Source of the DNA: Saccharolobus solfataricus P2 | Lineage (GTDB): Archaea; Thermoproteota; Thermoprotei_A; Sulfolobales; Sulfolobaceae | Assembly: GCF_000007005.1 (NCBI RefSeq) | Contig: NC_002754.1 | Direction: 5' to 3' (one strand) | Length of the DNA: 64,000 bases | Shown: piece by piece, positions 2,118 to 22,637 of the stretch | How the letters are laid out: every line of letters begins with the position of its first letter | How positions within the stretch are numbered: position 1 is the stretch's first letter | Position numbers and translations under genes: made by a program | The notes under the pieces: generated by a model | Told to the model about the DNA's origin: nothing | Databases searched by the model: none | The model's input: only the letters and a program-made list of their open reading frames with translations

Positions 2118-4130
<2,013 letters not shown>

Positions 4131-4132
<2 letters not shown>

Positions 4133-4176: not shown

Positions 4177-6309
4177 TTATCTCCTTCTTAATCCTAGTAT
4201 TACTCCTATTATTACTATGATTATAACTACTACTGCTATTATGGCATATAGTGTAGTATTGGATGATGAAGTTACAGTAGTAGTAACAGTAGCTGTGGTG
4301 GTACTTACGGATGTGGATACACTTGTGGTAGTTGAAACACTTGTGGTAGTAACAGTACTTGTGGTAGTGCTAGTTGTAGTAGTTGATGTAGTTGTGGTAG
4401 TGCTAGTTGTAGTAGTTGTGGTTGTTTGATACACGAATGGGTCATTGGAAGTATACCAACTTGAAGGAACTTGTGAAGTATAATACCACCAAGGCTCAGG
4501 AACAGACTGATTAACCAAATGTAAGGCTAAAACAACAGGTAAAGGAGTTGAGGGAAGACTGGTCCATGGGGGAGCCGGCCAATAATAGTTTTGCTGAGTT
4601 GGCCAACCAGTAACAGTATTGTTAACATACTCATACCACTCTGCGCCGTATACTAGAGCAATGGAAGGCATATATTTTATCCATAGAGCAGCTAGCTTAT
4701 TTACTATACTATAATAGGCATTATCGTTTATGCTGAAGTTACCATTTGCCCAGTTCACAAGTTGTTCGAACGTTGGATGGATAATTGATAAATTAAACCT
4801 TTCTATGTTATAATATGTGCTATTTCCTATCGGTGTTATGTTGCCGGGGGAATTCCAATAACCATACAAATACCCAGAAAGTGGTTGTATAGGAGTAGGA
4901 CCGCTAATTAAATCCCACATTAGTCCCATCCAGTAATTGCCAGTTTCCATGTAATTATACCATGTTGTAAACGGTGGTGTTTGTACTTCCACAGTTATGC
5001 CTATTTGCTTCAAATCTTGTGCAATTAAAGTTAAATCGGCGTCCCAATCAGTCCATCCGGCTACCGTAATGATGGTCATTGCTGGTACTGCAGTACCATT
5101 TGGTGTAATTAGTTGGCCATTAACTAATTTATAGCCGTGGGATTCAAGCAACTGTAATGCAGCAGTAACATTACCTTGAGGTGGAGCGAATTGCTCAGCA
5201 AGTTGCAACACCGACGAATTTATATATTGTAGCTGTTGTGGAGGTAATGGAAGAGGCGTAGTTGCTGGCGGTTCGTATCCATATTCGCCCAAATAGTATA
5301 TTGCTGTTCTATTGATCGCAAGGCTTATTGCTTGTCTTAAAACTGGATCGGATAAAGGCCATTTTAGGTTATTGAGTGTCAACATTGTTGGAAATCCAGG
5401 AGCAAAATAGTAATGATAGTGTAGAGGATCTTTTGCCACAAATTGCTGTTGTATATTTGGTTCGAATAGTCCAGCCCAAGTTATTTGCCCATTATTTAAT
5501 GCAGTATCTGCTTGAACATTACTAGGATATGATGGATAGAGTAAGTATTTTATTCTGGGTTCTCCCGGCATCCAATAGTGTGGGTTGGCCACTAGTACTA
5601 TTTCTTGCGGGCTGAAACTATATAGCATATAAGGTCCAGTACCTATTGGATTTGTATTAGGGTATGTGAATGGATTTCCAGTCTTGTTTAGTCCTACATA
5701 TGTTCCATTTGGTAATTGCTCTACTGGGAATATTTTACCCCATTGTGCTGGGTCCACAGGCCATTGCTCCAAAATAGTATACAATACCATTGGCGTTACT
5801 CCAGGTTTAAATACTATTTCTAGCTCATATGGGTTTATTATTGTCATGTTAGCTATTTGATTAGCTGAATATCCCAATTGTGGGTATGCTTGTTCTAACG
5901 CTAATGTGTACCATACTGCTGTAGCGTTAAATGGTGTGCCGTCAGTGAAGTATACGTCATGCCTTAAGTATAATATTAATGCCAATGTTTGTACCTTAGT
6001 ACCATTTGGCAAGTTAACATAACCGGTAGTAAATGTCCAATTGGTGGCTAACCATGGAATAATTTGACCACTTAGCGAATTAACTAGGGCTAATGGTTCG
6101 TAAATAAGCCAAATTAGACCTCCGGGTAAGGCTGGAGCGTTCCATGGATTAAAGTTATCTTGCCATACTATACCCGGACTAGGCATAATTACCATGCTTC
6201 CTTCTGGTTGTACTGATGTTGACTGTGATAGTATTGGCATTGCAAATATCCCTATGCTTATTACCATTAATACTGTAATTATTGTAGAAATTATCTTATA
6301 CCTTTTCAT
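4177..6309 (-). CDS. ABC substrate-binding protein, peptide/nickel family (probably oligosaccharide-binding)
   Basis: Signal peptide, family-5 motifs (YEPL, W.FT, GTGPY), Ser/Thr-rich linker, C-terminal TM helix and RRR tail. Confidence 0.9.
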   Translation of the reverse strand: MKRYKIISTIITVLMVISIGIFAMPILSQSTSVQPEGSMVIMPSPGIVWQDNFNPWNAPALPGGLIWLIYEPLALVNSLSGQIIPWLATNWTFTTGYVNLPNGTKVQTLALILYLRHDVYFTDGTPFNATAVWYTLALEQAYPQLGYSANQIANMTIINPYELEIVFKPGVTPMVLYTILEQWPVDPAQWGKIFPVEQLPNGTYVGLNKTGNPFTYPNTNPIGTGPYMLYSFSPQEIVLVANPHYWMPGEPRIKYLLYPSYPSNVQADTALNNGQITWAGLFEPNIQQQFVAKDPLHYHYYFAPGFPTMLTLNNLKWPLSDPVLRQAISLAINRTAIYYLGEYGYEPPATTPLPLPPQQLQYINSSVLQLAEQFAPPQGNVTAALQLLESHGYKLVNGQLITPNGTAVPAMTIITVAGWTDWDADLTLIAQDLKQIGITVEVQTPPFTTWYNYMETGNYWMGLMWDLISGPTPIQPLSGYLYGYWNSPGNITPIGNSTYYNIERFNLSIIHPTFEQLVNWANGNFSINDNAYYSIVNKLAALWIKYMPSIALVYGAEWYEYVNNTVTGWPTQQNYYWPAPPWTSLPSTPLPVVLALHLVNQSVPEPWWYYTSQVPSSWYTSNDPFVYQTTTTTTTSTTTTTSTTTTSTTTSTVTTTSVSTTTSVSTSVSTTTATVTTTVTSSSNTTLYAIIAVVVIIIVIIGVILGLRRR

Positions 6310-6466
6310 ACCTATACACCATTAATCTGTTTATAATGGTATATTAGGCTATATTTAAACTTTTCTCAGTAATTAAAATCACAATTTTCTAGCAACCTAA
6401 TTAGTGATACAATCTCTTAATAGATTTTCAAGCAAATATCAATAGAAATTAAGAATATAAAAAATG

Positions 6467-7270
6467 TTATTCAATTCTTTTATATGGATCTGGTACTGCT
6501 TCTATTAATAGTCTGGTATACTCGTGTTTTGGATGTGAAATAATAGTTCCCACATCACCCTCCTCCACTATCCTACCATTCTTCACCACATATACCCTAT
6601 CAGCCACATATCCGATTGTAGCAATATCGTGAGTAATGTACATAATCGATATCCCTTTCTCATCTCTTAACCTCTTAAATAAGTCTAATAGTGATGCCCT
6701 TATTGAGGCATCAACGTTTGATACTGGCTCATCAGCTATTAGCACCTTAGGATTTAGTGCCAACACTCTAGCCAAGTAGACTCTCTGTCTTTGTCCTCCA
6801 GAAAGTTGGAACGGATACTTATTGAGAAAGTCTTCTGGAGGAGTTAATGCAACTTCTCTTAGTAACTCTTTTATTCTCTCTTCAATATCACCCCTATATT
6901 TGTATATCTTTAGTGGCCTTTCTATATGCCATTTAACTGTATGAGCTGGGTCTAGTGAGGAATAGGGGTCTTGGAAAACTAATTGAACATCAGCTCTATA
7001 CTGTTTTAGTTGTTTCTTATTCGCTTTGGTAACATCTAAACCCATGGGAGTATAAATTATTGAACCTTTGGTCGGTTTCAATAACCCTACTATCATCCAA
7101 GCTATTACTGTCTTACCTCCGCCGCTTCCTCCCACCATACCTACAATCTCATTCTTCCTTATATCCATATTCACATCCCATATCCCCGGTCTATGCTCTT
7201 TTCCAAAAACACCTTTTCTAACTATGAAGTCTTTATATACATGTATTAACTCAATGAGCTTGTCACTCAT
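6467..7270 (-). CDS. ABC ATP-binding protein (OppF/DppF-like)
   Basis: Walker A GGSGGGKT, LSGGQ signature, LIADEP. Confidence 0.92.
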   Translation of the reverse strand: MSDKLIELIHVYKDFIVRKGVFGKEHRPGIWDVNMDIRKNEIVGMVGGSGGGKTVIAWMIVGLLKPTKGSIIYTPMGLDVTKANKKQLKQYRADVQLVFQDPYSSLDPAHTVKWHIERPLKIYKYRGDIEERIKELLREVALTPPEDFLNKYPFQLSGGQRQRVYLARVLALNPKVLIADEPVSNVDASIRASLLDLFKRLRDEKGISIMYITHDIATIGYVADRVYVVKNGRIVEEGDVGTIISHPKHEYTRLLIEAVPDPYKRIE

Positions 7271-8258
7271 AAGCTTTCTTCACCTCATTTCTCCATTCCG
7301 GATACCTAATGCACTTATAAAATCCAAACTTATCATACGCTACGATTTGAGGTGGGACTTCCTTACATGTGCTCGTAACAAAGGGACATCTTGAAGAAAA
7401 GACACAGCCTTTAGGATATCTTATAAAACCCTCAAAGTCACCAGGAATTCTAGGTAGTTTTTTCCCTCTAGATCTAACGGTAGGTACACTACTAAGCAGA
7501 AGATAGGTGTAGGGATGATAAGCTTCCTCCAATAACGTATTATACTTACCATACTCTACTATTTGCCCACCGTACATTACAGCTATGTAATCTGATATCT
7601 GGAAAAGCATTGCTATATCATGACTTATAACTACCAGTGTTAGATCCTTTTCCTTCTGTATTTTCTTTAATAATTTGAGTATTTCATATTGCACCACTAC
7701 GTCTAATCCAGTAGTTGGTTCGTCCATTATGAGTATTTTTGGATTTAATAGGAGTGAGATTGCAATTACAACCCTCTGTTTCATGCCTCCAGACAATTGG
7801 AAAGGGTACATATCTAATACTTGCCTATCAGTTAACCCTACCTCTTCCAATGTGTTATACACAACGTCAATGTTGGCATAATAATCCATTCCTTTAGCCT
7901 TTAAGATATCTGTAAAGGTCTCCTTAACCTTTCTGATTGGGTTTAGGGAGTTTTGCGCAGCTTGAGGAACGTAAGATATTACGCTTCCCCTTATTTTATT
8001 TAGCTCATCTCTTGACATCGAGAGAATATCGTATTTGCTATCTACAATTATACTACCCCTCTCCACGTATAATGGGGGATTTACAAATCCCATTATCGTT
8101 GTTGCAAGAGTAGACTTTCCAGAACCTGACTCCCCTGCAACACCTATTATTTTACTTTCCGGGATGTCAATACTGACATTTCTTAGGACTTTTATTATAC
8201 CGTAGTCCGATAAGTAACCTACGTTTAAGTTTTTTACCGATATTGAAATTTCGCTCAT
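7263..8258 (-). CDS. ABC ATP-binding protein (OppD/DppD-like)
   Basis: GESGSGKS, LSGGM, MDEPTT and C-terminal Cys cluster GC.F..RC. Confidence 0.92.
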   Translation of the reverse strand: MSEISISVKNLNVGYLSDYGIIKVLRNVSIDIPESKIIGVAGESGSGKSTLATTIMGFVNPPLYVERGSIIVDSKYDILSMSRDELNKIRGSVISYVPQAAQNSLNPIRKVKETFTDILKAKGMDYYANIDVVYNTLEEVGLTDRQVLDMYPFQLSGGMKQRVVIAISLLLNPKILIMDEPTTGLDVVVQYEILKLLKKIQKEKDLTLVVISHDIAMLFQISDYIAVMYGGQIVEYGKYNTLLEEAYHPYTYLLLSSVPTVRSRGKKLPRIPGDFEGFIRYPKGCVFSSRCPFVTSTCKEVPPQIVAYDKFGFYKCIRYPEWRNEVKKAYE

Positions 8259-9235
8259 CTAGTCATCACTTCCTCCTTCTCTTTTGTTTTTTCTATTTTC
8301 TTCATATATTTCTTTACGTCCCATATCCTTAGCCTTGGATTCGCAACTCTATCAATCCCTATGTTTATTAAAGCGAACGAAAACGCTACTAAACCAATCA
8401 TAAGCCCAGGAGGAATGTACCACCACCATAATCCTCTTAGATAAGCCTCCCCTCCTAAGGACCAATAAAGCATAGTTCCCCAATTTACTTGTGTTAGACT
8501 ACCCAATCCAAAATAATAAATGAATGTAAAGCCAGCTATTCCATAAATTGCAGTAAAGAAGAAGTTTGACGCTATGAACGGTAGATTATTAGGTATAATT
8601 TGATTGAAAATTACACTTAATTTAGATTCTCCAATAAGATCAGAAGATAATATATACTCCCTTCTCCTTAACGATAATACTAAAGATCTCAAAACCCTAG
8701 CACCCCATGCCCAACCAGTTAATGAAAGAGTAAGCAAAATTGTTATATACCCTAGTTTAAACTGTAATGCCCCTAGATATGCTCCTATTAATTCGATAAT
8801 CAAAATACCGGGTATTATTAAGAAAATCTGAGTTATTGCACTTAATATTCTATCAATTATCGTCTCTGCATATAATCCTGCGGTTACTCCTATGAGGATA
8901 GCTATTAGCGTACCTATTAAACCTACAGCAAAACCTACTCCAATTACTGGAAATCCACCTACTAAAAGTTGAGAAAAAATATCATGACCATAGTCATCTG
9001 TGCCTAATAGGTGTTGAGGTGAGGGTGGTAGATCCCTAGGAAAGTTAGTCGCGCTTGGATTGTATGGAGTATAAAATACTCCTATTAAGGAAAATACTAT
9101 TATCCCTAGTAGTATATAGAACCCAACTCTTGATACTCTTTGTTCCCACACACCTCTTATTAGATTATAAACCGGACCGTACTTATCTATTTTTAAATTA
9201 AAAGTATTTAACTTTCTGCTGGCCATCTTATACAC
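8255..9235 (-). CDS. ABC permease (DppC-like)
   Basis: HLLGTDDYGHD motif, multiple TM segments, EAA-like loop. Confidence 0.9.
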   Translation of the reverse strand: MYKMASRKLNTFNLKIDKYGPVYNLIRGVWEQRVSRVGFYILLGIIVFSLIGVFYTPYNPSATNFPRDLPPSPQHLLGTDDYGHDIFSQLLVGGFPVIGVGFAVGLIGTLIAILIGVTAGLYAETIIDRILSAITQIFLIIPGILIIELIGAYLGALQFKLGYITILLTLSLTGWAWGARVLRSLVLSLRRREYILSSDLIGESKLSVIFNQIIPNNLPFIASNFFFTAIYGIAGFTFIYYFGLGSLTQVNWGTMLYWSLGGEAYLRGLWWWYIPPGLMIGLVAFSFALINIGIDRVANPRLRIWDVKKYMKKIEKTKEKEEVMTR

Positions 9236-10256
9236 CCTCCGTCTCCTCTTGACTTGTCCTAGGATCTATTATTGTGTAAATTATGTCTGCGACGAAATTA
9301 CTTAATACCATCGCAGTAACTAACATGAAAAATATTCCGCTTAGTAACGGGTAATCCAAACCGGTAATGGCTTGATTAAAGAAGTAGCCTAAACCTGCAT
9401 AGTTAAATAAATACTCTATCGCAACAGCACCCAATACAGAGTATCCTAAGGAAATGGAGAAACTGGTAAAGTTAGGTAATAATGCTAACCTATAGGCCTT
9501 ACTTGCAACCATTTTTTCTGATACTCCCATTAACCTATAATAATTCATATAATCCTCTTGTAAAATGGGTATCATATTATTTCTCATTCCCATTATCCAT
9601 CCTGCTAGGGAAAAGAGAATTAGTGTTAATGTGGGTAATATTGCATGATATATTACGGACCAAATAAAGGGCAAACTCATAGTAGGTTTGAGAAATTGAA
9701 AGGTATTATACTGCCCACCTGTAGGGAATATGTGAAGATCAATTGCTAGTACTTCTATTAAAATCTCCCCAGTAACAAAAACAGGAAACGTATATAAAAA
9801 CATCATGAGTCCCAATATGGCGTAGTCACTTATTTTACCTCTTGACAAAGCAGCCACTCTGCCAAGCAAATTACCTATGAAGAAAGAGGCTACAATAGCT
9901 GGTATTACTATACCAAAAGTCCAAGGAGCAGCTTCAGTTATTATTGTGCTTACAGATACTGGAAATTCGGTAAGAGAAACACCGAAATTCAGTGTAACTA
10001 TTTCTTTTAAGTAATTAAAATACTGAATATAAAGAGGTTGTTGATACTGAGCTAAACCTAATTGCTGAACAAGAATTTGAATCTCTTGTTGAACATTTTG
10101 CCCATAATTGGATCCAGCTCCACCAATTCTACTATAAATTATGCTTGCCAATGCACTACCAGGTATTAGCCTAGGAAGGATAAAATCTATTGTAATTCCA
10201 ACAAACCAAACTATGATGTAATATATACCCCTTTTGATCAAGAAATCTCGTCTCAC
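9228..10256 (-). CDS. ABC permease (DppB-like)
   Basis: FILPRLIPG N-terminus, QY..Y motif, C-terminal DYPLL and IDPR. Confidence 0.9.
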   Translation of the reverse strand: MRRDFLIKRGIYYIIVWFVGITIDFILPRLIPGSALASIIYSRIGGAGSNYGQNVQQEIQILVQQLGLAQYQQPLYIQYFNYLKEIVTLNFGVSLTEFPVSVSTIITEAAPWTFGIVIPAIVASFFIGNLLGRVAALSRGKISDYAILGLMMFLYTFPVFVTGEILIEVLAIDLHIFPTGGQYNTFQFLKPTMSLPFIWSVIYHAILPTLTLILFSLAGWIMGMRNNMIPILQEDYMNYYRLMGVSEKMVASKAYRLALLPNFTSFSISLGYSVLGAVAIEYLFNYAGLGYFFNQAITGLDYPLLSGIFFMLVTAMVLSNFVADIIYTIIDPRTSQEETEGV

Positions 10257-10844: not shown

Positions 10845-11915
10845 ATGTCAAAGAGAATTGGTGTAGCGGTTGTAGGTCTAGGCTCAATTGGTAAAACTCA
10901 CGTAAAAGCATTAAAGGACTTAGAAAAGGAAACAGAATTCGTAAAACTAGTTGCGGTAGTGGATCAGATTAAGGCAATAGCAGAAAAAATAGGAAGTGAA
11001 TACGGTACACCCTATTATACCACTATAGATGAAGTATTAAGAAACTCAGAGGTCGATGTCATAAGCATAGCAACCCCTTCCTATTTGCACGCACCCCAGG
11101 CTATTTTAGCAATTGAATATGGAAAACACGTAATAGTCGAAAAGCCAATGGCTACCACTCTAGCTGGAGCTAGAGAGATGGTAAGTAGGGCTGAGAGAAA
11201 TGAGGTTAAACTAGGAGTAATATTCCAAGAGAGATATGCCCCTGACATAAGGAGGTTAAAGAACGATATCTTGAAAGAGCTTGGTAGAATATATTTGATA
11301 GAGTCAGAATTGAAATGGTACCGTGATATGAAGGGATATTATAAGAGGGATGAGATAGCTAGGAGTTGGAGGGGCATGTGGAACACAGAAGGAGGTGGAG
11401 TTATGACAAATCAAGGTATACATACTATTGATTTAATGATATGGCTTAATGGTGAAGTGGAAGAGGTGTCTGGATTTGTTGACAATTTAACTCATGATGG
11501 AATCGAAGTCGAGGACACAGCAGTCGCGATTATGAGATACAAGAACGGAGCATTAGGTACTATTTCTCAAACAGTCTCAATGAAGCCCACTACTTACCAA
11601 TACAGGAAGATTAGGGTAAATGGAAGTAATGGGTTTGTGGAAATTACTGACGGTAGTCTTAGTACAGTCGCAATTGAGGGTAAAATAGAGGAGTCAAAAT
11701 CCAGTGTTGAATATAAGAAAGAAACGATAGCTCAGCCAGGTAATTTGCATAAGGAGTTGCTCAGAGATTTCTTAAGGGCTCTATCAGAGGATAATGATTT
11801 TCCGATAAATGGAAAAGAGGGTATGAAAAGCTTAGAGGTGATAAAAGCCGTTTACCTTTCCTCAGTTAATAGACAAGTAGTGAAGTTACCTTTAGATGTT
11901 AGGATTGTAGTGTAA
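10845..11915 (+). CDS. Gfo/Idh/MocA family NAD(P)-dependent oxidoreductase
   Basis: VVGLGSIG Rossmann motif, ATP...H, EKP and GGG..NQGIHTID. ATG 10845 preferred over GTG 10800. Confidence 0.88.
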   Translation: MSKRIGVAVVGLGSIGKTHVKALKDLEKETEFVKLVAVVDQIKAIAEKIGSEYGTPYYTTIDEVLRNSEVDVISIATPSYLHAPQAILAIEYGKHVIVEKPMATTLAGAREMVSRAERNEVKLGVIFQERYAPDIRRLKNDILKELGRIYLIESELKWYRDMKGYYKRDEIARSWRGMWNTEGGGVMTNQGIHTIDLMIWLNGEVEEVSGFVDNLTHDGIEVEDTAVAIMRYKNGALGTISQTVSMKPTTYQYRKIRVNGSNGFVEITDGSLSTVAIEGKIEESKSSVEYKKETIAQPGNLHKELLRDFLRALSEDNDFPINGKEGMKSLEVIKAVYLSSVNRQVVKLPLDVRIVV

Positions 11916-12050
11916 CCATTTTATTATTCATACTTCCTAGCTGATTACGATTAAGAACTTTTTTTCGCATCTTTCCTTATTTTTTAAAAACTATTCTAGA
12001 TCTCAAAAAAGTTGAACAGTGCTTACTACTCTTTAATAATTTTTTTGGTT

Positions 12051-12075
12051 AACTAGTTAAAGCTAAATTTAAATA
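12051..12075 (+). promoter_or_regulatory. AACTAGTT motif + 9 nt + TATA box (TTTAAATA)
   Basis: AACTAGTT at 12051-12058 and TTTAAATA at 12068-12075, which ends 24 nt before ATG 12099. Confidence 0.55.
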
Positions 12076-12098
12076 TCAAATACGTGTTCCTCTCATCT

Positions 12099-12797
12099 AT
12101 GAAACTCGGAATACAAAGTTATTCGCTTAGGAAATTAACTTATGAGAATGCTTTAAAGGTAATGTCTGAGTTAGGAATATCCTACGTTGAAGCGTTCCCA
12201 AGACACTTGCCTCCTTCTTCTAATAGTGTTAAGGATATAATCAATTTACATAAAGAAAACGGAGTCAAAGTTATCGCCCATGGGGTTAACCATCTTAAGA
12301 GCGATAAGAAAGAGTTGAGAAGTATCTTCGACTTCGCAAACAAGGTTGAAATTGAGGTAATAACTGCGGATCCAGATGAGGATTGCCTTAACTTGATGAG
12401 TGACCTAGTAAAGGAATACGACATTAAAGTTGCCATACATAATCATGGTCCCTATCATAGATGGGGGTCTTATAAGAAGATTTACGAGTTCACGAAAAAC
12501 TTAGATTATAGAGTTGGAATGTGTCTTGATCTAGCCCACTTATTTAGATATGGCGAGAATCCAATTGAGGCAGTAAATACACTAAGGGATAGAATTCACG
12601 ACATTCATGTAAAAGATGTAAATAATAAGGGAGAGGACGTAATAGTGGGTAGTGGAATTTTAGATGTGAAGGGAGTTATAGGCAAGGTAAAGGAGTTGAA
12701 TCTAGACATACCGCTAATGATAGAATATGAGCCAGAACCAGAAAACCCTCTTCCGGGAATAGTTAAGTCCTTGGAGTACGTGAAAAAACTACTCTAG
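12099..12797 (+). CDS. Sugar-phosphate isomerase/epimerase (xylose-isomerase-like TIM barrel); possible 3-ketoglycoside lyase
   Basis: [24 protein letters not shown] and IEYE metal-binding motifs. ATG 12099 fits leaderless spacing. Confidence 0.8.
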
Positions 12798-14870
12798 GTT
12801 AATCTTTCCCCTAATTTTTTGATTAATCTTAGCAACGTAAGTGTTTTGCATTGTCTTCTCTACTTGAATTTCCTTACTATCGTCAACTATTATCTTGCTC
12901 ACTGGTTTCTCTGATGTGATAGTTAGCTTAGATACATAAATCTCCCTTGAAAACTTAATTTCATTACTTGAGGAGGTAATTTCAGCATTATCGTAACGCT
13001 TGAACGAGGTCTCACCGTAAACTATTAACTCGTCACCCTCCAACGGGATTATTGATCCTTCTCTCAAGTAAATTGGCAACTCATGAGTAGACTTAACAAC
13101 ACTCTTACCGTTTATTATCTCGCCATTCCAGTAATTGTACCACTTACCTCTAGGTAATGTTACTAACCTACTCTCCTCTTTACTTACAATTGGAGCGTAA
13201 AGCAAATACTTACCAACCATATACTCGTCTTCTATTCTATACATGTCGTCATCATCCTGGAATTCGTAAAATAGAGGTCTAATTACCGGATGTCCCTTCT
13301 CACTAGCCTCTAAAGCTAAGGAATAAATATAGGGTAAGAACTTATACCTCAACTCCACGATTTCCTTTACTTTCTCCTTATAGTAATCTGGCAGGAAAAC
13401 TGGTTCCGTATCTATACCATCAGTTGCCTTGTGTGACCTATAGAAGGGGAAGAACAAGGCTAAAGCATAATATTTGACTAATAAATCCATAGAGTTGTCA
13501 ATTTCCGCGAAGTTCCTGCCTTGAAATCCACCTATATCACAACCTACAAATGGTACACCAGAAATCGATAAGCCGAGAACCAATTGTAGTTGAAGCTTCA
13601 AATCATCCCATGAAGGGGTATTATCACCAGTCCAGATGAATGCGTATCTTTGTATTCCGGCATAACCGGCTCTACTCAAGATAAATATTTCATTCCTATG
13701 GCTTGTCCTAAACCCCTTAAACGTTGCCATAGCCTCATATAAAGGATAAGCATTTCTAACTTTTTCGTGTTTAACCCTCTTTCCCCTCAAGTAGTGAACT
13801 ACGTTATCTGGAAAAGTGGTAACAAGTCTATCATCTCTGAACTGTACGGGTAACGAAGATAAAACGTCTCTGATCTCAATAGCCCTAGAGAAGTCAGTTG
13901 GTTCATTCATGTCTAGCCAAATACCATCAACTCCTTGTGAAAGCCATTCGGAGATTAACCCAGCCCACCATTCTCTAGTATCCTCCCTGAAGAAGTCTGG
14001 ATAGACAGTAGTACCAGGCCACATTTTACCTACGAATAGTTCACCACTTTCAATCTCACAGAATTTTCCCATTCCGGAAAGAAATGGTGAATAATTCTGA
14101 TCAACCCTTATTCCGTGGTCAACTATTGTAATTAGCTTAACGTTTCTCTTGTGTAATTCGTCAATTAGCTTTTTAGGTTCTGGGAACCTATAAGGATGCC
14201 ATGTAAATAACTTATAGGAGTCCATGTAGTGTATATCTAAGAATACTCCAGCTACTCTAAAACCCTCCTTTTGCATTATATCTACTAACTCAACAACCTT
14301 ATCCTGGGGGTAGTAAGAGTAGCGTGATATCATGTAACCGAAAGCCCACATGGGAGGTAGGAAAGGTTTTCCGGTAAGCTCCGTGTATTTCTCTAGAACG
14401 TCCTCAATTCTTGGCCCTTCAATCACGTAAAACTCTACTGAGTCCTCTGGAATTGTAACAATTACTTTATCGTATTCCTCAAGTCCCACGTCGAAGATCA
14501 CTTTAGAAGCTGAGTTGAAGAAGTAACCAGTTGCAACGCCGTCTTTCACTGATATAAATAAGGGTATACTAACGTAAAGTGGATCTTGATATTTCTTATA
14601 AGCCCCAGCGTCAACGTTATACATCACATACCTTTTCCTCTTTCTATCCAACTCAAACGCCTTCTCTCCCAATCCTATAATGTGCTCTTTCAAATCCAAT
14701 GATTTCTCGACAATAACCTTGTTACCTTGTTGAACTATTGTTAAACCCAACTCTGATAAAGATTTATTCGATGATATCTTTTGCTCAAGTGGGAATTCTA
14801 TGGGGGGAAATGGTTCTCCTATAACTACTTTGTAAACGCCTTTGTTCTCGTATATTTTTATTGTCTGCAT
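12789..14870 (-). CDS. malA: GH31 alpha-glucosidase MalA
   Basis: WLDMNEP nucleophile and WTGDN acid/base motifs; 693 aa with the recognised N-terminus [11 protein letters not shown]. Confidence 0.96.
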
Positions 14871-16120: not shown

Positions 16121-18286
16121 TTATCTTCTTCTTACCACTACATAAGCTACTACTGCTATAATTACAATTATAACAACAATTATACCAGCAATAACACCAG
16201 TAGATAACCCACTAGATGTTGACACAGTACTAGTTACCGAAGTAGTACTCATAGAGGTTGTAGTAGTGACAGATGTTGACGCACTCGTTGTAGTAACAGT
16301 TGAAGTACTTGTGGAAGTCTGAGTTACTGTTGATGTGGAAGGCTGCAACATAGCTAATAATGATGGTGGTGTTGCAGTATTGGCCTTGCCGTATATGAAT
16401 GCAAGTAAATCTTGCCAAGCAGCTTGAGTATAAGCAACCTCTTGTGCGTTAGACATACCAGGAGGTCTAGGAGCAAGATTCATTAACATTAATAGATTTC
16501 CTCCTATCCAAGGTTCCACATTCCATGTATAGAAGTATTGTGGAGTCGAAAATCCAATATAGTATTGGTCCTCATATTCGTATCTTGGATATGCGTCAAA
16601 GACCACTGGGATTGCGGGTAAATCCTTTATTAGAATAGCTGCCATATTATTATATATCTGTTTTAGTAATGTTACATTTGTTGTATCTCCAGCCTGTATC
16701 CAAAGGTCTATAAATTCCTTAGGAGGGATCCATCTACCAAAATCAGAATATACATATACCCCAATAGTTTCTAGAGCAGTTACGTTTGGCTGATCAGTAC
16801 CAGGTATAAGTGGAGGTATGAACGCAGATTCCCACACATAATAAGGACTGTAAGCATTAGTGATCCAGTATATTAAATCATACTGACCCCCATCAAGAGC
16901 CGCGAACATTTGTGAAGGAGTTTCTGACACAACATTAATCTGTAGTCCTATCTGTGCTAGATCCTCTGCAATTAGTTGAGTAGTGGCATAGGTATCAGAG
17001 AAACCTTGATAATTTATCATTGTATAAGTTGGTAGTGGTGTACCATTAGGGAAACTTAATTTTCCATTAATTATTTTTAGACCGTGCGATTCCAAAATCT
17101 GTATAGCTTCAGTGAGATTATACTGATCTACTTGATGGGCTTCCTGTATAATTGTTGAATTTAACCAGATTTCTTCCATTGGAGATGGTAAGAAGTCAGC
17201 AGGTGTTGGAGGAGCTCCGGTAGGTATCCCATATTGCGAACCTAAAGAAATTTGTGTTCTATTTAAGGCTAATGACAACGCGTATCTAAACCAGGTCTCG
17301 TTCCAAGGCCAATAGTTAAGCCTAGCAAAGTTTATCCACAAGAACGAGGGTTGACCTCCAGATCCATTCCCTATACTTGCCATACCATGATAATATTGAG
17401 GATTAGCATATGTAAATAACTTACTGAAAGGAGTTGATCCAGTACTTCCAGTTCCACCCCACTGCGCGATTCCTTTAGCTAGAAGGCCATATGCTTGAGC
17501 ATTACTAATCCCAACATAGTATGTGAACGTTGATATAAATGGCCTACCTGGGATCCAGTAGTATGGATTTCTATAGAATGTAGCTTGGGTTTCTGTGGCC
17601 TTAGCTAAATAATATGGACCTGTTCCCACAGGTATGGGTATTACTGCTGCAGCTGGATTCGTTAAATTAGCGTATTGTTCCCAAGGGACAATAAATTGCT
17701 CTAATAAGTCATACAACGCGTACTGGACGTTTGGTTTACCAAAATGGAAAATAACCTCGTATGGATTAACTTCGGTTACTGTAACATTAAATGGATTTCC
17801 ATAGACCTTAAAATAGTCTTGATAAGTTGCAACCACATCCTTAGCTGAAAATGGCCATAATATTTGTCCTTGCGTACCATTAGGTAATGTTCCATTATAG
17901 TAGAAATAAACTCCATGTCTTAGATATACAATGAAATTTGTATTATTATCTGTGAATGTCCAGTTTGTCGCCAACCATGGATAAACCTGACCTGTCATGA
18001 AATCTGCAATTCCTAATGTCTCGAATATAAACTCATAAGGAATATCATCGGATCTCTCTCCTACTCCAAACACGTTCCAATTATTAGGTACAATAGGTCC
18101 ACTTCCGGTTGTTACTCCAAAAGTTGGATATGACGATGCCCATGGAAAACTATAGCTTGCTGCCGGATTTAATTGAGGTGATTGTGAATTGACTACTCTG
18201 CTACTGATAATAAATGGCATAAAGGCTGAAAGTGCCATTAATATTAATGCAGTAAGCCCTATTACATTTTTTATCTTTTTGTTCAT
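16121..18286 (-). CDS. ABC substrate-binding protein, peptide family, oligosaccharide-binding (recalled literature assigns maltodextrin or cellodextrin)
   Basis: Signal peptide, family-5 fold motifs, Ser/Thr linker, C-terminal TM helix and RR tail; paralog of 4177-6309. Confidence 0.9.
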   Translation of the reverse strand: MNKKIKNVIGLTALILMALSAFMPFIISSRVVNSQSPQLNPAASYSFPWASSYPTFGVTTGSGPIVPNNWNVFGVGERSDDIPYEFIFETLGIADFMTGQVYPWLATNWTFTDNNTNFIVYLRHGVYFYYNGTLPNGTQGQILWPFSAKDVVATYQDYFKVYGNPFNVTVTEVNPYEVIFHFGKPNVQYALYDLLEQFIVPWEQYANLTNPAAAVIPIPVGTGPYYLAKATETQATFYRNPYYWIPGRPFISTFTYYVGISNAQAYGLLAKGIAQWGGTGSTGSTPFSKLFTYANPQYYHGMASIGNGSGGQPSFLWINFARLNYWPWNETWFRYALSLALNRTQISLGSQYGIPTGAPPTPADFLPSPMEEIWLNSTIIQEAHQVDQYNLTEAIQILESHGLKIINGKLSFPNGTPLPTYTMINYQGFSDTYATTQLIAEDLAQIGLQINVVSETPSQMFAALDGGQYDLIYWITNAYSPYYVWESAFIPPLIPGTDQPNVTALETIGVYVYSDFGRWIPPKEFIDLWIQAGDTTNVTLLKQIYNNMAAILIKDLPAIPVVFDAYPRYEYEDQYYIGFSTPQYFYTWNVEPWIGGNLLMLMNLAPRPPGMSNAQEVAYTQAAWQDLLAFIYGKANTATPPSLLAMLQPSTSTVTQTSTSTSTVTTTSASTSVTTTTSMSTTSVTSTVSTSSGLSTGVIAGIIVVIIVIIAVVAYVVVRRR

Positions 18287-18343: not shown

Positions 18344-18473
18344 AAGTTGAATAGGGGACAGAATTTATATCGTCAAGGGATTTATAAAGAATTAAAATTT
18401 AATAAAATATTAAGTAAGAAAAATGGCGAAACTTTTATATTTATGGTATCAAACATACAAAATGTGTAATAAG

Positions 18474-19529
18474 ATGGAGTATATGAAATTTGGTAATAGT
18501 GGTTTAAAAGTGTCGAAGTTTTGTCTAGGTACATGGCATTTACCTCCGTCTAAGGAAAGGGATAGCTACGGGGTTTATAAGGTAGATGAGGAAGAGAGTA
18601 AAAAGACAATTGTAAAGGCAATAGATCTTGGCGTAAATTTCTTTGATACTGCTAATGTCTATCATGGTGTGATGCAGGGACCAGACGTTTTCCATGTAGG
18701 TAATGCTGAAAGGATATTAGGGGAGGCAATTAAGGGATACGATAGAGAATCGTTAGTTTTAGCTACAAAGGTTCGCGGGAAGATGGCTGAACATGCTAAT
18801 GGTGAAGGACTTTCAAGGAAGCACATTATGTGGCAAGTAAGAGAATCGTTGAAGAGATTGAATACTGATTATATCGATATATATTTAATGCATAGACCAG
18901 ATCCAGATACACCAATAGAAGAGACTATGGAAACATTTCACGATTTGGTAAGACAAGGTAAAATACACTACATTGGTGAGAGTTATTTTGATCCGACAGA
19001 CATACCCTATTTAGTTAAGATTGCAAAAGACCTACATGTTCCTTTCATAGCCATGCAAGAACCCTATAATTTTTTAGAGAGAGACATAGAAAAAGATAAA
19101 TTTATACTGGCAAAAACGTATGGATTAGGAATAATGGCATATATACCCTTAGCACAAGGAGTTCTTACAGGTAAATACCTTAATACTACTCCAGATATGA
19201 GTAGAGCTACATACGTACCCGAAATATCTAATAGGTATTTTACTAAAGAGAATTTCGAGGTTTTAAGGGAATTTCATGAAATTGCTAAGGAACTAGGAGT
19301 CACAGATACCCAATTAGCCTTAGCGTGGATTTTCAAGATTCAAGAAATCAATCAAATTACCATAGTCCCTATAATAGGGGTTACAAAAATTAATCAGCTA
19401 GAGGAAAACATTGAGAGCCTAAATGTGAAGATATCGAATGATACATATAAGAAGTTAGACGAAATTTCAAAACGCGTTAAGGTAAATTGGGAAATTAAAT
19501 ATAATAAGATTATAAAAAGATTTGAATAA
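18474..19529 (+). CDS. Aldo/keto reductase
   Basis: GNSGLKVSKFCLGT, FFDTANVY, DIYLMH and PLAQGVLTGKY. ATG 18474 preferred as start. Confidence 0.9.
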   Translation: MEYMKFGNSGLKVSKFCLGTWHLPPSKERDSYGVYKVDEEESKKTIVKAIDLGVNFFDTANVYHGVMQGPDVFHVGNAERILGEAIKGYDRESLVLATKVRGKMAEHANGEGLSRKHIMWQVRESLKRLNTDYIDIYLMHRPDPDTPIEETMETFHDLVRQGKIHYIGESYFDPTDIPYLVKIAKDLHVPFIAMQEPYNFLERDIEKDKFILAKTYGLGIMAYIPLAQGVLTGKYLNTTPDMSRATYVPEISNRYFTKENFEVLREFHEIAKELGVTDTQLALAWIFKIQEINQITIVPIIGVTKINQLEENIESLNVKISNDTYKKLDEISKRVKVNWEIKYNKIIKRFE

Positions 19530-19609: not shown

Positions 19610-21463
19610 TTAGATAGTTTTATATGGATCCGGCACTGCCTCTATTAAACGTTTAGTATACTCATGAGATGGATTGGATATAACTTCATAAGTGTTTCCC
19701 TTTTCTACTATCCTTCCCTTATAAATAACCATAATCTCGTCAGCAATATAATTTACAGTTGCAATGTCGTGGGTTATGTATAATATGCTGATACCATTCT
19801 TTTTAAACTTCTTAATTAGATTTAATATGCCTGCCCTCAACGAGGCATCTAACATGGAAACTGGTTCATCAGCAACTAACACTTTAGGTTCTACAGCAGT
19901 TGCTCTAGCTATTGCCACCCTTTGCCTTTCTCCACCAGATAGCTCATGAGGATATTTATATAGATATTTCTCGGGTGGCTTTAATCCTACATTTTTAAGA
20001 ACCTCAATTATTTTCGGTAATAATTGATCTTTATTTGAAACCTTTTTATGTATGAGTAAAGGTCTCTCTACGTGCCACCTAACAGTATGACGAGGATCAA
20101 GCGAAGAGTAAGGATCTTGGAATATCATCTGAACGTTCTCCTTATACCACATAGAGTTCCTCACGCCGTATTCACTCACATCTTTTCCTAATAGAATTAT
20201 CTTACCAGAAGTCTGTTGAATCATACCAGCTAGTATTTTAGCGATAGTAGACTTACCATGTCCACTTCCGCCTACCAATGCTGTTATAGTGCCCTTCTTT
20301 AACTCAAAGGATACATCATTAACAGCATTGATGGGTTCACTTAAAATAAGGTTTTTTCTAATATAATAAATTTTACTTAAATTCAGTATCTTCATTACAA
20401 CCTCATGTTGATTGCTCTCTGATAAATCAGTTTCTGCCTTCTCCTCAGCATAATATTCTAACGGTATGGGAAGAGTAGATAAGTCAACATATCCCCCTTT
20501 TTGTAGGAAACACCTAGCCTTATGACCATCCATTATATCTCCTAAAGCTGGGTTAAGAGTGCTACATTTTTCCATCTTGAATGGACATCTATCATAAAAC
20601 CTACATGAATTAGGTACTTTCGATAGCATAAGTGGTGGATTCCCTGGTATTGATAATAATTTCTCTCGTCTCTTTACCAAAGACGGGAGGCTACTTATAA
20701 GAAGGTATGTATATGGATGAGACGGCCTTTTTATAATTTCCTCCTTTGATCCAATCTCTACTATCTCACCAGCATACATTATGCCTACTCTATCCGATAT
20801 CATCAACAACATTGATATATCATGAGATATAATTACTAAAGAAACACCTAACTGTCTTTGTATTCTCTTTAGATCCTTAAGTATTTCATATTGGACAATA
20901 ACGTCCAGTCCTGTTGTAGGCTCATCGAGTATTATTAAAGAGGGGTTTAAGAGAATAGACGTAGCTATTACAACTCTTTGCCTCATACCGCCTGATAACT
21001 CATGCGGATACATATTAACTACATTATAAGGAAGATCCACTAACTCCAGTTTCTCTTTTATTAACTTACGTGCCTCTTCCACATTTACTCCATGACTTAC
21101 CGCAGCTCGCATCATTTGATCACCTATTTTAGCTACTGGATCTAACGCATCCATAGCAAACTGAGGTACATACACGAACTCTTTCATTCTAAGCTTTCTG
21201 AGTTCTTCCTGAGTAATTGATAAGATATCTTTGTCTTTCAAATAAACGTGGCCCCTAAGGACTACTCCAGGGTACTTAAGTAAGCCGTAAATTGCCATTG
21301 CTAACGTAGACTTCCCACATCCAGATTCGCCCGCTATAGCGAAAATCTCATTTGGATATACCTCAAAATTAACGTTAGTAACACCAATTACAAATCCATC
21401 TTGATTAAAATAACCTGCTGTTAATTCATTTACCTTGAGTAAACTATCCATAATCTCCTCCAC
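19610..21463 (-). CDS. Fused double ABC ATPase (OppD+OppF)
   Basis: Two Walker A motifs (GESGCGKS, GGSGHGKS) and two LSGG signatures; the start may be ATG 21451. Confidence 0.92.
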   Translation of the reverse strand: MEEIMDSLLKVNELTAGYFNQDGFVIGVTNVNFEVYPNEIFAIAGESGCGKSTLAMAIYGLLKYPGVVLRGHVYLKDKDILSITQEELRKLRMKEFVYVPQFAMDALDPVAKIGDQMMRAAVSHGVNVEEARKLIKEKLELVDLPYNVVNMYPHELSGGMRQRVVIATSILLNPSLIILDEPTTGLDVIVQYEILKDLKRIQRQLGVSLVIISHDISMLLMISDRVGIMYAGEIVEIGSKEEIIKRPSHPYTYLLISSLPSLVKRREKLLSIPGNPPLMLSKVPNSCRFYDRCPFKMEKCSTLNPALGDIMDGHKARCFLQKGGYVDLSTLPIPLEYYAEEKAETDLSESNQHEVVMKILNLSKIYYIRKNLILSEPINAVNDVSFELKKGTITALVGGSGHGKSTIAKILAGMIQQTSGKIILLGKDVSEYGVRNSMWYKENVQMIFQDPYSSLDPRHTVRWHVERPLLIHKKVSNKDQLLPKIIEVLKNVGLKPPEKYLYKYPHELSGGERQRVAIARATAVEPKVLVADEPVSMLDASLRAGILNLIKKFKKNGISILYITHDIATVNYIADEIMVIYKGRIVEKGNTYEVISNPSHEYTKRLIEAVPDPYKTI

Positions 21464-21579: not shown

Positions 21580-22637
21580 TGCTTTGTGGATTGCTTCAGA
21601 ATTGTACAAAAAGTTTATAAATTATTCGTTTAAGTATTACCTATGGAAAAGAGTAAGTACAAGAGGGACTGGAGCAAGTACGACGAGAACGTCATTACTA
21701 GATATAAGTTGATGTTCCCCTTCTACGTATTCGAACATTGGTGGGACTTATTAGCAGAGGAGAACAGGAACGCTAGGACAAAGTATAAAGCTCCGAAGGA
21801 GTTCGACGAATTCCTAGCCTTCCTCCACATCTTCCTACCTTACAGAGCAATAGAAGGAGTATTAAGAGCCTTAGAACAATTGAAGATCATCCCCACAAGC
21901 CTCGATTACTCAACAATATGGAAGAGAGTGAGGAACATGAAAATAACCTTCCCCGAGGCAAGTGACGAACTTGAAGTAATTGCAGACGCTACAGGCATTA
22001 GCACAAACACGGGAGGACAATACATTGTTGCCAAGTGGGGTAAGACTAGGGATTCAAAATTCCTCAAGATCGAGATAGTAATGGACAATAACGAATTCAA
22101 CGTGATAAACGCTGAGGTCACTAGCAACGAGGTTGAAAGCGCTGTAAAAACAGTTAAGGATCTTCAAGATAAGGGAAAGAAGGTCAAGAAGTTTTATGGA
22201 GATAAGACATATGACGCCAATGAGGTTTACAAGACCGGAGTTGAGGTTGTAGTTCCTCCCAAGAAGAACGCTTCTACTAAAAGGGGCCATCTTGCTAGAC
22301 GTAAGGCTGTGCGGGAGTTTAGGAAGTTGGGTTATGATCGTTGGAGGGAGGAGAAGGGTTATGGCGTTAGGTGGAGGGTCGAGTCCTTGTTCTCTGCGGT
22401 GAAGCGTACTTTTGGGGAATCGGTTAGGGCAACAAGTTTTGCTGGACAAGTAGTTGAGGCTAAGCTCAAGTTCTGGGCTTACGCGTGGATGGTTCACTTG
22501 GCGAATTCTGTAGTCGGTAGGGCTCCGGGCATTAGGGTGTAAGCTTGAGAGGAACGTTGAAATAAATATTAATTACTGAAAAATTAGTGTTATACAATAT
22601 CGTTTTAATGAGACAAATTGAACAAATCAACAAAGTA
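21580..22637 (+). mobile_element. ISC1058-type IS5-family element, 1058 bp, 9-bp target-site duplication
   Basis: TSD TCAGAATGA at 21571-21579 and 22638-22646. Imperfect TIRs TGCTTTGTGGATTGCTTC / TACTTTGTTGATTTGTTC. Measured length is 1058. Confidence 0.93.
21643..22542 (+). CDS. IS5-family DDE transposase
   Basis: IADATG, YGDKTYD and RWRVES motifs inside the element. Confidence 0.93.
   Translation: MEKSKYKRDWSKYDENVITRYKLMFPFYVFEHWWDLLAEENRNARTKYKAPKEFDEFLAFLHIFLPYRAIEGVLRALEQLKIIPTSLDYSTIWKRVRNMKITFPEASDELEVIADATGISTNTGGQYIVAKWGKTRDSKFLKIEIVMDNNEFNVINAEVTSNEVESAVKTVKDLQDKGKKVKKFYGDKTYDANEVYKTGVEVVVPPKKNASTKRGHLARRKAVREFRKLGYDRWREEKGYGVRWRVESLFSAVKRTFGESVRATSFAGQVVEAKLKFWAYAWMVHLANSVVGRAPGIRV

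Follow-up and report, generated by a model that had tools for sequence, protein, structure and literature searches.

Does Saccharolobus solfataricus P2 possess, alongside its glycoside hydrolases, a route that cleaves glycosides by oxidation and elimination? The question is raised by two genes in a 64,000-nucleotide window of this archaeon (NC_002754.1; all positions are those of the whole window), which encode a Gfo/Idh/MocA protein (10845-11915; hereafter Gfo) and a xylose-isomerase-like triosephosphate isomerase (TIM)-barrel protein (12099-12797; hereafter TIM) beside the alpha-glucosidase gene malA. An initial annotation of the sequence had proposed that Gfo oxidises a glycoside and that TIM, akin to the BT2156-type lyases of Bacteroides, eliminates the aglycone. 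Our analysis favours a reading in which the two proteins would constitute a cytoplasmic keto-sugar module for an imported glycoside, with C3 oxidation followed by beta-elimination. This reading is plausible and unproven, and we hold it tentatively, at somewhat less than an even chance.

The pair corresponds to two open reading frames (ORFs), 10800/10845-11915 and 12084/12099-12797, both on the plus strand. The ATG codons at 10845 and 12099 are favoured as starts, since orthologue lengths and the family alignment agree on them, and give proteins of 356 and 232 residues, respectively. Since the Sulfolobaceae orthologues share 61-97% identity with TIM and 78-100% with Gfo, the two frames can be regarded as real genes and not as chance ORFs; for Gfo, the S. 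islandicus cluster representative is 100% identical. The order and positions of the two genes in the initial annotation are thus borne out by the frames and by Pfam, and the same applies to their placing beside malA. Indeed, the gene convergent with that of TIM encodes MalA, matching PDB 2G3M end to end (1583 bits, residues 1-693), and the 3' ends of the two genes overlap by 9 nucleotides. Neither Gfo nor TIM has an N-terminal signal sequence, and no twin-arginine translocation (TAT) signal was found on Gfo.

TIM carries the Pfam domain AP_endonuc_2 (PF01261, xylose-isomerase-like TIM barrel; 2.2e-22) and its AlphaFold model has a pLDDT (predicted local distance difference test) score of 96.4. 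By phmmer, the protein matches the structures 3LMZ, 3P6L and 4KW2 at 7.6e-31, 1.7e-30 and 3.8e-28, with about 30% identity. A profile built from 30 family members (alignment A1) finds the same three structures at 4.7e-76 to 5.8e-51, and Foldseek superimposes the TIM model on them with template modelling (TM) scores of 0.78-0.94, those for 3P6L and 3LMZ being 0.93-0.94. All six motifs pointed out in the initial annotation occupy their expected places: KLGIQSYS (residues 2-9, 12102-12125), IHNH (113-116, 12435-12446), DLAH (144-147, 12528-12539), HVKD (170-173, 12606-12617), a 13-residue block (180-192, 12636-12674) and IEYE (208-211, 12720-12731). The blocks GxQSYS, IHNHGP, CxDxxH, HxKD, GxGxLD and EYE are common to TIM and the three structures. 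On these comparisons, TIM is assigned to the orphan 3LMZ/3P6L/4KW2 subfamily, the sole family whose membership tests it passes. A literature search on this subfamily returned one incidental mention and no assigned function.

The kinship with BT2156-type lyases claimed by the initial annotation did not hold. Structures of these lyases were solved by Nasseri et al., and 8TCD, 8TCR, 8TCS and 8TCT are among the deposited codes. The blocks KLGMQSYS and DVIWGTGILDVKG had been ascribed to such a lyase, which was wrong: it is 3P6L that has RLGMQSYS and DVIWGTGILDVKG. The lyase AL1 (8TCS) reads IGIQLYSVRD and has no second block of the DVIWGTGILDVKG type. In a PDB search with the TIM sequence alone, no AL1/BT1 chain appeared at E < 1, and among the 50 best Foldseek matches of the TIM model there are none of these lyases. 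Direct membership of TIM in the BT2156/AL1 family was thus rejected on three grounds, the profile search of the PDB, NCBIfam and Foldseek. The fold, on the other hand, is uninformative on function, because superfamily members all score about alike: outside the Parabacteroides distasonis trio 3LMZ/3P6L/4KW2, IolI, Art22, epimerases, IolE and DgpB-C all range from about 1e-12 to 1e-10, and Foldseek was rejected as a discriminator. Among characterised proteins, the best match to the TIM sequence alone is AtOGE, the O-glycoside beta-eliminase of Agrobacterium tumefaciens (3.7e-4).

The predicted active site of TIM is more informative. The family alignment has as invariant residues H36, H114-N-H116, D144, H147, R150, K172-D173, G184, G186 and E209-x-E211, and H170 is nearly invariant; H36, R150, K172 and G184/G186 are the family's own. 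In profile-profile comparisons by hhalign, collinear from the first strand on, the family alignment matched the HNH-type TIM barrel Iso2 of the P2B11 gene cluster (98%, E 1.6e-13), the eliminases AtOGE (97.4%, E 1.4e-11) and AL1 (96%, E 4.5e-9; 22% identity), the epimerase YcjR (94%, E 9.7e-8, over 223 columns) and the Glu-type TIM barrel P2B11-Iso1 (67%, E 5e-5). The AL1 (8TCS) and AtOGE (8BVK) sequences used here were rebuilt from HMMER alignments and miss a few terminal residues; their numbering was checked against the papers.

In AtOGE, the Mn2+ ligands and the catalytic base have been mapped, with H134A inactive and H189A retaining less than 0.1% activity (PMC10628242), and residue roles for AL1, including the Mn/Co site, Trp214, His103 and Glu272, come from a preprint (10.1101/2024.03.25.586180). 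Onto these sites, TIM H114 aligns with the metal ligands AtOGE His132 and AL1 His178, H116 with AtOGE His134, the catalytic base, and AL1 His180, D144 with the metal ligands Asp163 and Asp211, and H170 with the metal ligands His189 and His237. H147 takes the place of a Trp in AtOGE (DVAW) and of AL1 Trp214, a substrate contact. By motif spacing, given that the hhalign alignments end before that strand, E209 would correspond to AtOGE Glu233, a weak metal ligand, and to AL1 E270, and E211 to AL1 Glu272, a proposed base, with no AtOGE residue assigned. The putative metal ligands of TIM are therefore H114, D144, H170 and E209, and its putative bases H116 and E211. Since the invariant residues of TIM map one-to-one onto the Mn/Co site and the bases of AtOGE and AL1, they lend support to the reading of keto-sugar cleavage.

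The same comparison separates TIM from epimerases. YcjR, MJ1311 and P2B11-Iso1, all epimerase-type, have Glu at the position of His114. Accordingly, the Glu-Asp-His-Glu site of ketose 3-epimerases and YcjR, with its two catalytic Glu, is not found in TIM, whose first position is the invariant His114, whereas all the elements of the AL1 site, namely the His/Asp/His ligands, the second His of HxH and the Glu base, have counterparts there (H114, D144, H170, H116 and E211). IolE likewise has the His-x-His (KVAYHHH), DxxH, HxKD and E. IolE is a dehydratase, i.e. a beta-eliminase acting on a cyclic alpha-hydroxy-ketone. We infer from this handful of characterised members that the His-x-His branch of the superfamily may perform eliminations rather than epimerisations, which is not proven. 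By the design of its predicted active site, TIM would resemble AtOGE, AL1/BT1 and IolE.

Support for a role in 3-keto-sugar metabolism also comes from proteins in which the TIM family is fused to other domains. A HMMER scan of 1.84 billion representatives, clustered at 50% identity, yielded 765 clusters at E <= 1e-30, and the 150 best of them were surveyed for fusions. Seven are fused, in either order, to PF06439/DUF1080 (P0318, P0351, P0356, P0365, P0372, P0377 and P0386), two to ThuA (P0342 and P0386, the latter a triple ThuA-DUF1080-TIM protein of 708 residues) and one to GH88 (P0354), and three are tandem arrays of 2-4 TIM domains of up to 1049 residues (P0241-P0243). In these fusions, the TIM portion aligns to almost the full profile at 210-231 bits, and HNH, HxKD and EYE are retained in most cases. 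PF06439 is labelled '3-keto-disaccharide hydrolase', and in the Bacteroides system DUF1080 serves both as 3-keto-alpha-glucoside lyase and as glucal hydratase (10.1101/2024.03.25.586180). ThuAB makes 3-keto-disaccharides in rhizobia, and GH88 is a non-Koshland glycosidase family. The fusion partners all come from 3-keto or non-Koshland pathways, and because of them the reading of keto-sugar cleavage gains further support. In addition, a Gemmatimonadota family member lies in a Gfo-DUF1080-Gfo(TAT)-TIM operon, the second Gfo of which has BT_2158_fam as its best match. Together, these associations tie the TIM family to 3-keto-sugar metabolism, not to one catalytic step.

Gfo shows the two Pfam domains of a Gfo/Idh/MocA protein, GFO_IDH_MocA (PF01408, 2.8e-31) and GFO_IDH_MocA_C (PF02894, 1.6e-27), that is, a Rossmann domain with the EKP motif (residues 99-101) and a C-terminal alpha/beta domain. 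The Rossmann motif GLGSIG begins at residue 11, and Asp40 after the second Rossmann strand suggests the use of nicotinamide adenine dinucleotide (NAD) rather than NADP. The best PDB matches are WlbA (3q2i at 3.3e-42 and 3q2k at about 1e-42), which we take to be C3-specific uridine diphosphate (UDP)-sugar dehydrogenases, followed by the glucuronide-3-dehydrogenase of P2B11 (8TDI, 2.5e-24). With the P2B11 sequences of the preprint supplement (10.1101/2024.03.25.586180), BLASTP gave 30% identity over the full length to Oxido2 (4e-39) and 27% to Oxido1 (1e-29). Five of the six pocket residues of Oxido1, Trp179, Arg181, Tyr185, Asn205 and His209, are kept as W158, R160, Y165, N189 and H193. For the sixth, Asn147, which contacts NAD, the counterpart appears to be Gln128 in the FQER motif of Gfo; in AL3, Gln161 has this role (10.1101/2024.03.25.586180). 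By its full-length similarity and pocket residues, Gfo would qualify as a cytoplasmic glycoside 3-dehydrogenase of the P2B11 type. In NCBIfam, it scores 35.9 bits with BT_2158 (NF058561, cut-off 750) and 36.1 with BT_2159 (NF058563, cut-off 650), 135.8 with IolG (TIGR04380, cut-off 355) and 132.4 with the archaeal UDP-GlcNAc 3-dehydrogenase (NF040723, cut-off 450). Judged by such model scores, neither Gfo nor TIM belongs to the Bacteroides BT2156/BT_2158/BT_2159 families.

The pair is conserved in Sulfolobaceae. A Gfo gene followed by a TIM gene on the same strand is present in three further members of the family, S. tengchongensis (identity 73% for TIM and 78% for Gfo), a Saccharolobus metagenome-assembled genome (65% and 82%) and Sulfolobus sp. 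B5 (61% for TIM; Gfo not matched to a listed homologue). The order ABC (ATP-binding cassette) transporter-Gfo-TIM-GH31 is kept whole in the first two, and in Sulfolobus sp. B5 the surroundings are rearranged with the pair still together beside GH31 and SBP_bac_5 genes. Distant archaeal TIM family members adjoin a Gfo of another lineage (divergent, at about 100 nucleotides), a Zn-dependent alcohol dehydrogenase or GH127. Furthermore, P0220 (621 residues) is a fusion of an N-terminal Iso1-like Glu-type TIM barrel with a Gfo domain 36% identical to that of the window. Because of the Sulfolobaceae pairs, the coupling of Gfo orthologues to a TIM barrel in Caldivirga and Ignisphaera and the P0220 fusion, the association of this Gfo lineage with some TIM barrel is a conserved theme, the TIM partner having been exchanged in evolution.

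In Caldivirga sp. UBA161, one cluster (L096, DAXS01000011.1, 2996-8868) contains an aldo/keto reductase, GfoA, TIM1, TIM2 (on the reverse strand), GfoB and TIM3. TIM1, which follows a Gfo gene, is a clear homologue of AtOGE and AL1 (8bvk 1.3e-21; 8tcs 7.6e-14; 8tcs/8tcd about 1e-13), TIM2 resembles P2B11-Iso1 and GfoB is the orthologue of the window Gfo. With two Gfo and three TIM genes, the cluster is reminiscent of P2B11 and may surpass the window as a candidate locus for 3-keto-glycoside cleavage in Archaea. In Ignisphaera sp. (L097, 8071-8864), the TIM gene coupled to Gfo is in two pieces of 187 and 72 residues, the second of which keeps a C-terminal VEWE; this suggests that the gene is frameshifted or a pseudogene, or that the assembly is in error.

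Put together, the favoured reading would run as follows. Gfo, with NAD+, would oxidise a ring hydroxyl, most likely the C3-OH, of a glycoside imported by the adjacent ABC transporter. TIM would hold the 3-keto group by means of Mn2+ or Co2+ on His114, Asp144 and His170, with Glu209 close by, as the active site and the fusions suggest, and His116 and/or Glu211 would take the acidified C2 proton while the C1 substituent is expelled. This beta-elimination would free the aglycone and leave 2-hydroxy-3-keto-glucal, whose hydration could, speculatively, be performed slowly by the same enzyme or by an unlinked one, or be spontaneous at 80 C. The resulting 3-keto-glucose might then be reduced back by Gfo or by a nearby aldo/keto reductase, and the net outcome would be a redox-neutral, non-Koshland 'hydrolysis' beside MalA. 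The oxidation-elimination route of the initial annotation thus retains the support of the active site, the fusions, the Gemmatimonadota operon, the P2B11-like Gfo and the synteny, and loses that of a similarity to the BT2156 lyase.

Several observations weigh against this reading. Some concern the enzyme itself. The AL1/BT1 chains (8TCD/8TCR and 8TCS) reach the family profile only at E 0.016-0.028 (8TCD at 0.016, 8TCS at 0.028), with 17-18 bits, and the substrate residues of AL1 are not kept: Trp214 is replaced by His147, and the position of His103 is variable, the adjacent Gly62 alone being invariant. His66 of AtOGE, equivalent to AL1 His103, is not conserved in the TIM family either. Moreover, since IolE also has the His-x-His signature, the latter argues for elimination chemistry in general, not specifically for aglycone release. 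The comparison that the initial annotation had proposed, of TIM with BT2156-type lyases, IolE and epimerases, gave a divided answer. By profile hidden Markov model, the nearest characterised relative is IolE (3CNY, 2.9e-12, 49.7 bits), which goes against the proposal; IolE is also the best NCBIfam match (TIGR04379), covering residues 94-176 only, and because its 32.8 bits stand against a cut-off of 290, TIM is judged not to be an IolE.

Other adverse observations concern the setting. As the initial annotation had remarked for DUF1080, no DUF1080 appears when the entire 64 kb is translated in all six frames, and neither a second Gfo nor a second TIM barrel was found there; there is no hydratase candidate within the window. 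3-Keto sugars are labile, a concern at 80 C. In Caldivirga and Ignisphaera, the Gfo orthologue (59% and 54% identical, respectively) shows translational coupling to another TIM barrel, which is of the Glu type and has 'isomerase Art22' as its best PDB match; the literature on Art22 yielded no functional data bearing on Gfo, TIM or the TIM family. Most bacterial TIM family members, including most Planctomycetota copies, are orphans, and Gfo or DUF1080 lies within 500 bp in only about 11 of 80 bacterial and archaeal loci. This is roughly 3-fold above the far flanks, with p = 0.08 in a gene-rank Fisher test; the enrichment is modest and is not relied upon, the fusions being the stronger evidence. 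Strain PBL2025, which is without SSO3004-SSO3050, is viable (PMC8037382), and gene count leftward from malA (SSO3051) suggests that its deletion takes out both genes. A literature search on SSO3049 returned no functional data for the Gfo or TIM gene.

Finally, Gfo and TIM are probably not transcribed together, because the gap between their genes contains a T-rich tract (about 11955-11995) and a TATA-like box and widens from 183 nucleotides in the window to 428-655 in the orthologous loci. The box, ATTTAAATAT at about 12067-12076, lies roughly 25-30 nucleotides ahead of the TIM ATG and for this reason suggests a separate promoter for the TIM gene and a leaderless transcript, the promoter and terminator roles being those predicted from the sequence.

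If the pair does act in concert, its chemistry could follow another model, that of the E. coli ycj cluster, which combines an ABC transporter and glycoside phosphorylases with the Zn-dependent dehydrogenase YcjQ, the TIM epimerase YcjR and the Gfo-type D-glucoside 3-dehydrogenase YcjS. Gfo would make a 3-keto-glycoside, TIM would invert the neighbouring centre and reduction would give an alpha-glucoside for MalA. Gfo shares 29% identity with YcjS over the N-terminal 213 residues of the latter (7e-20), YcjR aligns well with the TIM family in the hhalign comparison above, one archaeal family member adjoins a Zn-dependent dehydrogenase, and the Art22-like partners of the Caldivirga and Ignisphaera Gfo orthologues carry a PDB title of isomerase. 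We nevertheless consider such an epimerase or isomerase module unlikely. In YcjR and other epimerases, the first metal position is occupied by Glu, which gives a two-Glu acid/base pair, whereas the TIM family has there an invariant His, like the eliminases and IolE. On the same hhalign scale, YcjR ranks below AtOGE, AL1 and Iso2; the fusions to DUF1080, a lyase/hydratase, fit better with a cleavage pathway, and the window has one dehydrogenase only.

It is to a similar degree unlikely that Gfo and TIM are mere neighbours in a sugar-utilisation island, working in unrelated pathways. The apparently separate promoters with the T-rich tract between, and the large gaps in orthologous loci, would be expected in this case, and Gfo orthologues are much wider in Archaea than the TIM family, have another TIM partner elsewhere and stand beside a family whose bacterial members are mostly orphans. 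Against this, the two genes have remained adjacent and in the same orientation in four lineages of Sulfolobaceae with TIM identities of 61-73%, even in B5 with its rearranged surroundings, the juxtaposition of a dehydrogenase and a TIM barrel is seen again, independently, in other lineages of Archaea, and the Gfo-TIM fusion P0220 exists.

Slightly less probable again is a pair of the IolG/IolE kind, in which the dehydrogenase would make an inosose or ulose from a cyclitol or free sugar and TIM would dehydrate it. The profile match to IolE, with HxH, DxxH, HxKD and E in common, agrees with this, as do the top NCBIfam matches of both proteins and the annotation of the S. shibatae Gfo orthologue as myo-inositol 2-dehydrogenase. 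However, both NCBIfam scores are far under their cut-offs, the 20 Pfam-annotated ORFs in the 2-39 kb region include no other iol-type gene, GH31 and a sugar ABC transporter are what is conserved around the pair, and the fusion partners of the family come from the 3-keto-glycoside pathway, not from iol. Least probable of all, and improbable in our view, is that TIM acts at another 3-keto step, for instance as an AtHYD-like 2-hydroxy-3-keto-glucal hydratase or in 3-keto-glucose handling, with cleavage occurring elsewhere or spontaneously: the Agrobacterium TIM barrel 8RO4, deposited as '2-hydroxy-3-keto-glucal hydratase', is a weak match to the family profile (9.4e-5), AL1/BT1 also hydrate glucal slowly (10.1101/2024.03.25.586180), and fusions and neighbourhoods point to a pathway and not to a step, but AtOGE and AL1 align better than 8RO4, and DUF1080 in the fusions already gives hydratase and alpha-lyase activity (same preprint), so that a complementary beta-eliminase would be the more sensible partner.

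The reading of C3 oxidation and beta-elimination can be extended into a wider proposal, which is more doubtful and which we regard as rather unlikely as a whole. Saccharolobus, and Caldivirga with its more canonical enzyme set, would carry out a cytoplasmic NAD+-dependent C3 oxidation and beta-elimination without DUF1080; the TIM family would be a further eliminase family beside BT1/AL1, AtOGE and the C-glycoside deglycosidases, and this would be the first non-Koshland glycoside cleavage known in Archaea, at about 80 C. In the searchable literature, where absence is no proof, there was no paper giving the TIM subfamily a function or reporting an archaeal 3-keto glycoside route. In bacteria of the gut and soil, oxidative-eliminative cleavage was recognised only recently as an alternative, of broad scope, to hydrolysis by glycoside hydrolases, so the principle is already known; what would be new are its cytoplasmic, archaeal, thermophilic and DUF1080-free character and the eliminase family. 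If the proposal is true, the pathway extends to Archaea and to hyperthermophilic, acidophilic conditions, the DUF1080 partner is shown to be dispensable, and a function is gained for an orphan TIM-barrel family of considerable size, to which three unannotated PDB structures of a human gut Parabacteroides belong. The enzymes could also be a source of heat-stable, broad-specificity deglycosylating activities for substrates that ordinary glycosidases cannot cleave. Should the pair be an epimerase or dehydratase module, it would still represent an uncharacterised sugar-conversion step in the main glycoside-utilisation island of a model archaeon.

The features of the locus are collected in the table.

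Table. Gfo/TIM pair and associated features, with positions in the 64,000-nucleotide window.
Feature	Position	Strand	Evidence
Gfo/Idh/MocA NAD-dependent sugar dehydrogenase (predicted), 356 residues	10845..11915	+	Pfam, PDB matches, BLASTP
Spacer between Gfo and TIM, 183 nucleotides	11916..12098	+	read from sequence
Xylose-isomerase-like TIM barrel, 232 residues, predicted cytoplasmic, 3LMZ/3P6L/4KW2 subfamily	12099..12797	+	Pfam, phmmer, profile, AlphaFold, Foldseek
MalA, GH31 alpha-glucosidase	12789..14870	-	Pfam GH31 7.8e-100; PDB 2G3M
Oligopeptide-class sugar ABC transporter, divergent from the Gfo gene	4177..10256	-	ORFs, Pfam
SBP_bac_5 binding protein of the ABC transporter	4177-6309	-	Pfam
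Two ATPases of the ABC transporter	6467-8258	-	
Two permeases of the ABC transporter	8255-10256	-	
Aldo/keto reductase	18423..19529	+	Pfam 2.5e-71

Judged from its position alone, the aldo/keto reductase is a speculative candidate for reducing the keto-sugar product; such reductases are also encoded close to the pair in loci L093 and L094, and in Caldivirga one stands at the margin of the Gfo/TIM cluster. Directly next to the ABC transporter neighbouring Gfo are the genes of a gluconolactonase (SGL) and of a glucose-dehydrogenase-like protein (2118-4132, plus strand), which overlap by 4 nucleotides and, by their predicted functions, would tie the island to the entry steps of the non-phosphorylative Entner-Doudoroff pathway. 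The SBP_bac_5 protein of this transporter and a second one (16121-18286, minus strand) have long Ser/Thr-rich C-terminal stretches, a hydrophobic segment and RRR, presumably the glycosylated form, anchored in the membrane, that is usual among binding proteins of Sulfolobus. A weak 'Rifin' Pfam match on the first was discarded as a low-complexity artefact.

Two insertion-sequence transposases were identified further along, DDE_Tnp_1 at 21643-22542 and one of the IS110 family at 28966-30033, both on the plus strand. In the second SBP_bac_5 transporter, the former separates the gene of a fused ABC ATPase (19610-21463) from those of the permeases (22735-24661), and its insertion may have divided this cluster. 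An alpha-L-fucosidase is likewise in two pieces, a 403-residue ORF (25262-26473, minus strand) covering positions 88-345 of the Pfam Alpha_L_fucos profile and, upstream in another frame, an 81-residue ORF (26503-26748, minus strand). This arrangement (25262-26748) is that of the S. solfataricus fucA gene, which is recoded by a programmed -1 frameshift (PMC8037382).

Elsewhere in the TIM family, in one Thermoproteota lineage (L004-L006, 8713-9876; L024, 1225-2412), an ORF of 387-395 residues overlaps the 3' end of the TIM gene. It is 70% identical between two lineages and has no Pfam match, and a GH127 gene lies upstream in divergent orientation; the ORF could encode a partner protein. A universal gene partner was sought among the recurring neighbours of 350-395 residues in archaeal and Armatimonadota loci and rejected, these proteins being unrelated.

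Comparison with known systems places the Saccharolobus pair among several bacterial ones. IolG and IolE, myo-inositol 2-dehydrogenase and inosose dehydratase, follow the same logic, a Gfo protein oxidising and an HxH-type TIM barrel eliminating, but the scores of the window pair are far under the equivalog cut-offs and its context concerns glycosides. In E. coli, YcjQ, YcjR and YcjS likewise combine dehydrogenase and TIM barrel on 3-keto-glycosides, beside an ABC transporter and glycoside-cleaving enzymes; there, YcjR is a Glu-type epimerase and the dehydrogenases are two, whereas the window has a His-type TIM barrel and one dehydrogenase. The nearest sequences to TIM, 3LMZ, 3P6L (BDI_1903) and 4KW2 (BDI_1873), are structural-genomics proteins of P. 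distasonis in the same subfamily; they are bacterial, with a few loop insertions, and other bacterial family members have signal peptides.

The AL1/BT1 lyases share with TIM the layout of a GIQxYS beta1 strand, HNH, DxxW/H, HxKD and ExE. They are periplasmic and encoded with DUF1080 and a TAT-exported Gfo, a setting that is found for some bacterial family members and fusions, but not for the window pair, which is without signal sequences or DUF1080. AtOGE (8BVK, PMC10628242) is, like TIM, a small single-domain TIM barrel, about 23% identical to it, and its loop IGTGVLDWKTI resembles the GxGxLDxK loop of TIM; it differs in having ELD..W where the TIM family has CLD..H, and this bacterial enzyme acts after a flavin adenine dinucleotide (FAD)-dependent glycoside 3-oxidase, in place of which the window has a Gfo dehydrogenase. 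The P2B11 cluster of a Gram-positive gut bacterium (Iso1-Oxido1-Oxido2-Iso2) is glucuronide-specific and has two dehydrogenases and two TIM barrels where the window has one of each. Like the Saccharolobus pair, it is cytoplasmic and consists of Gfo and TIM proteins only, without DUF1080.

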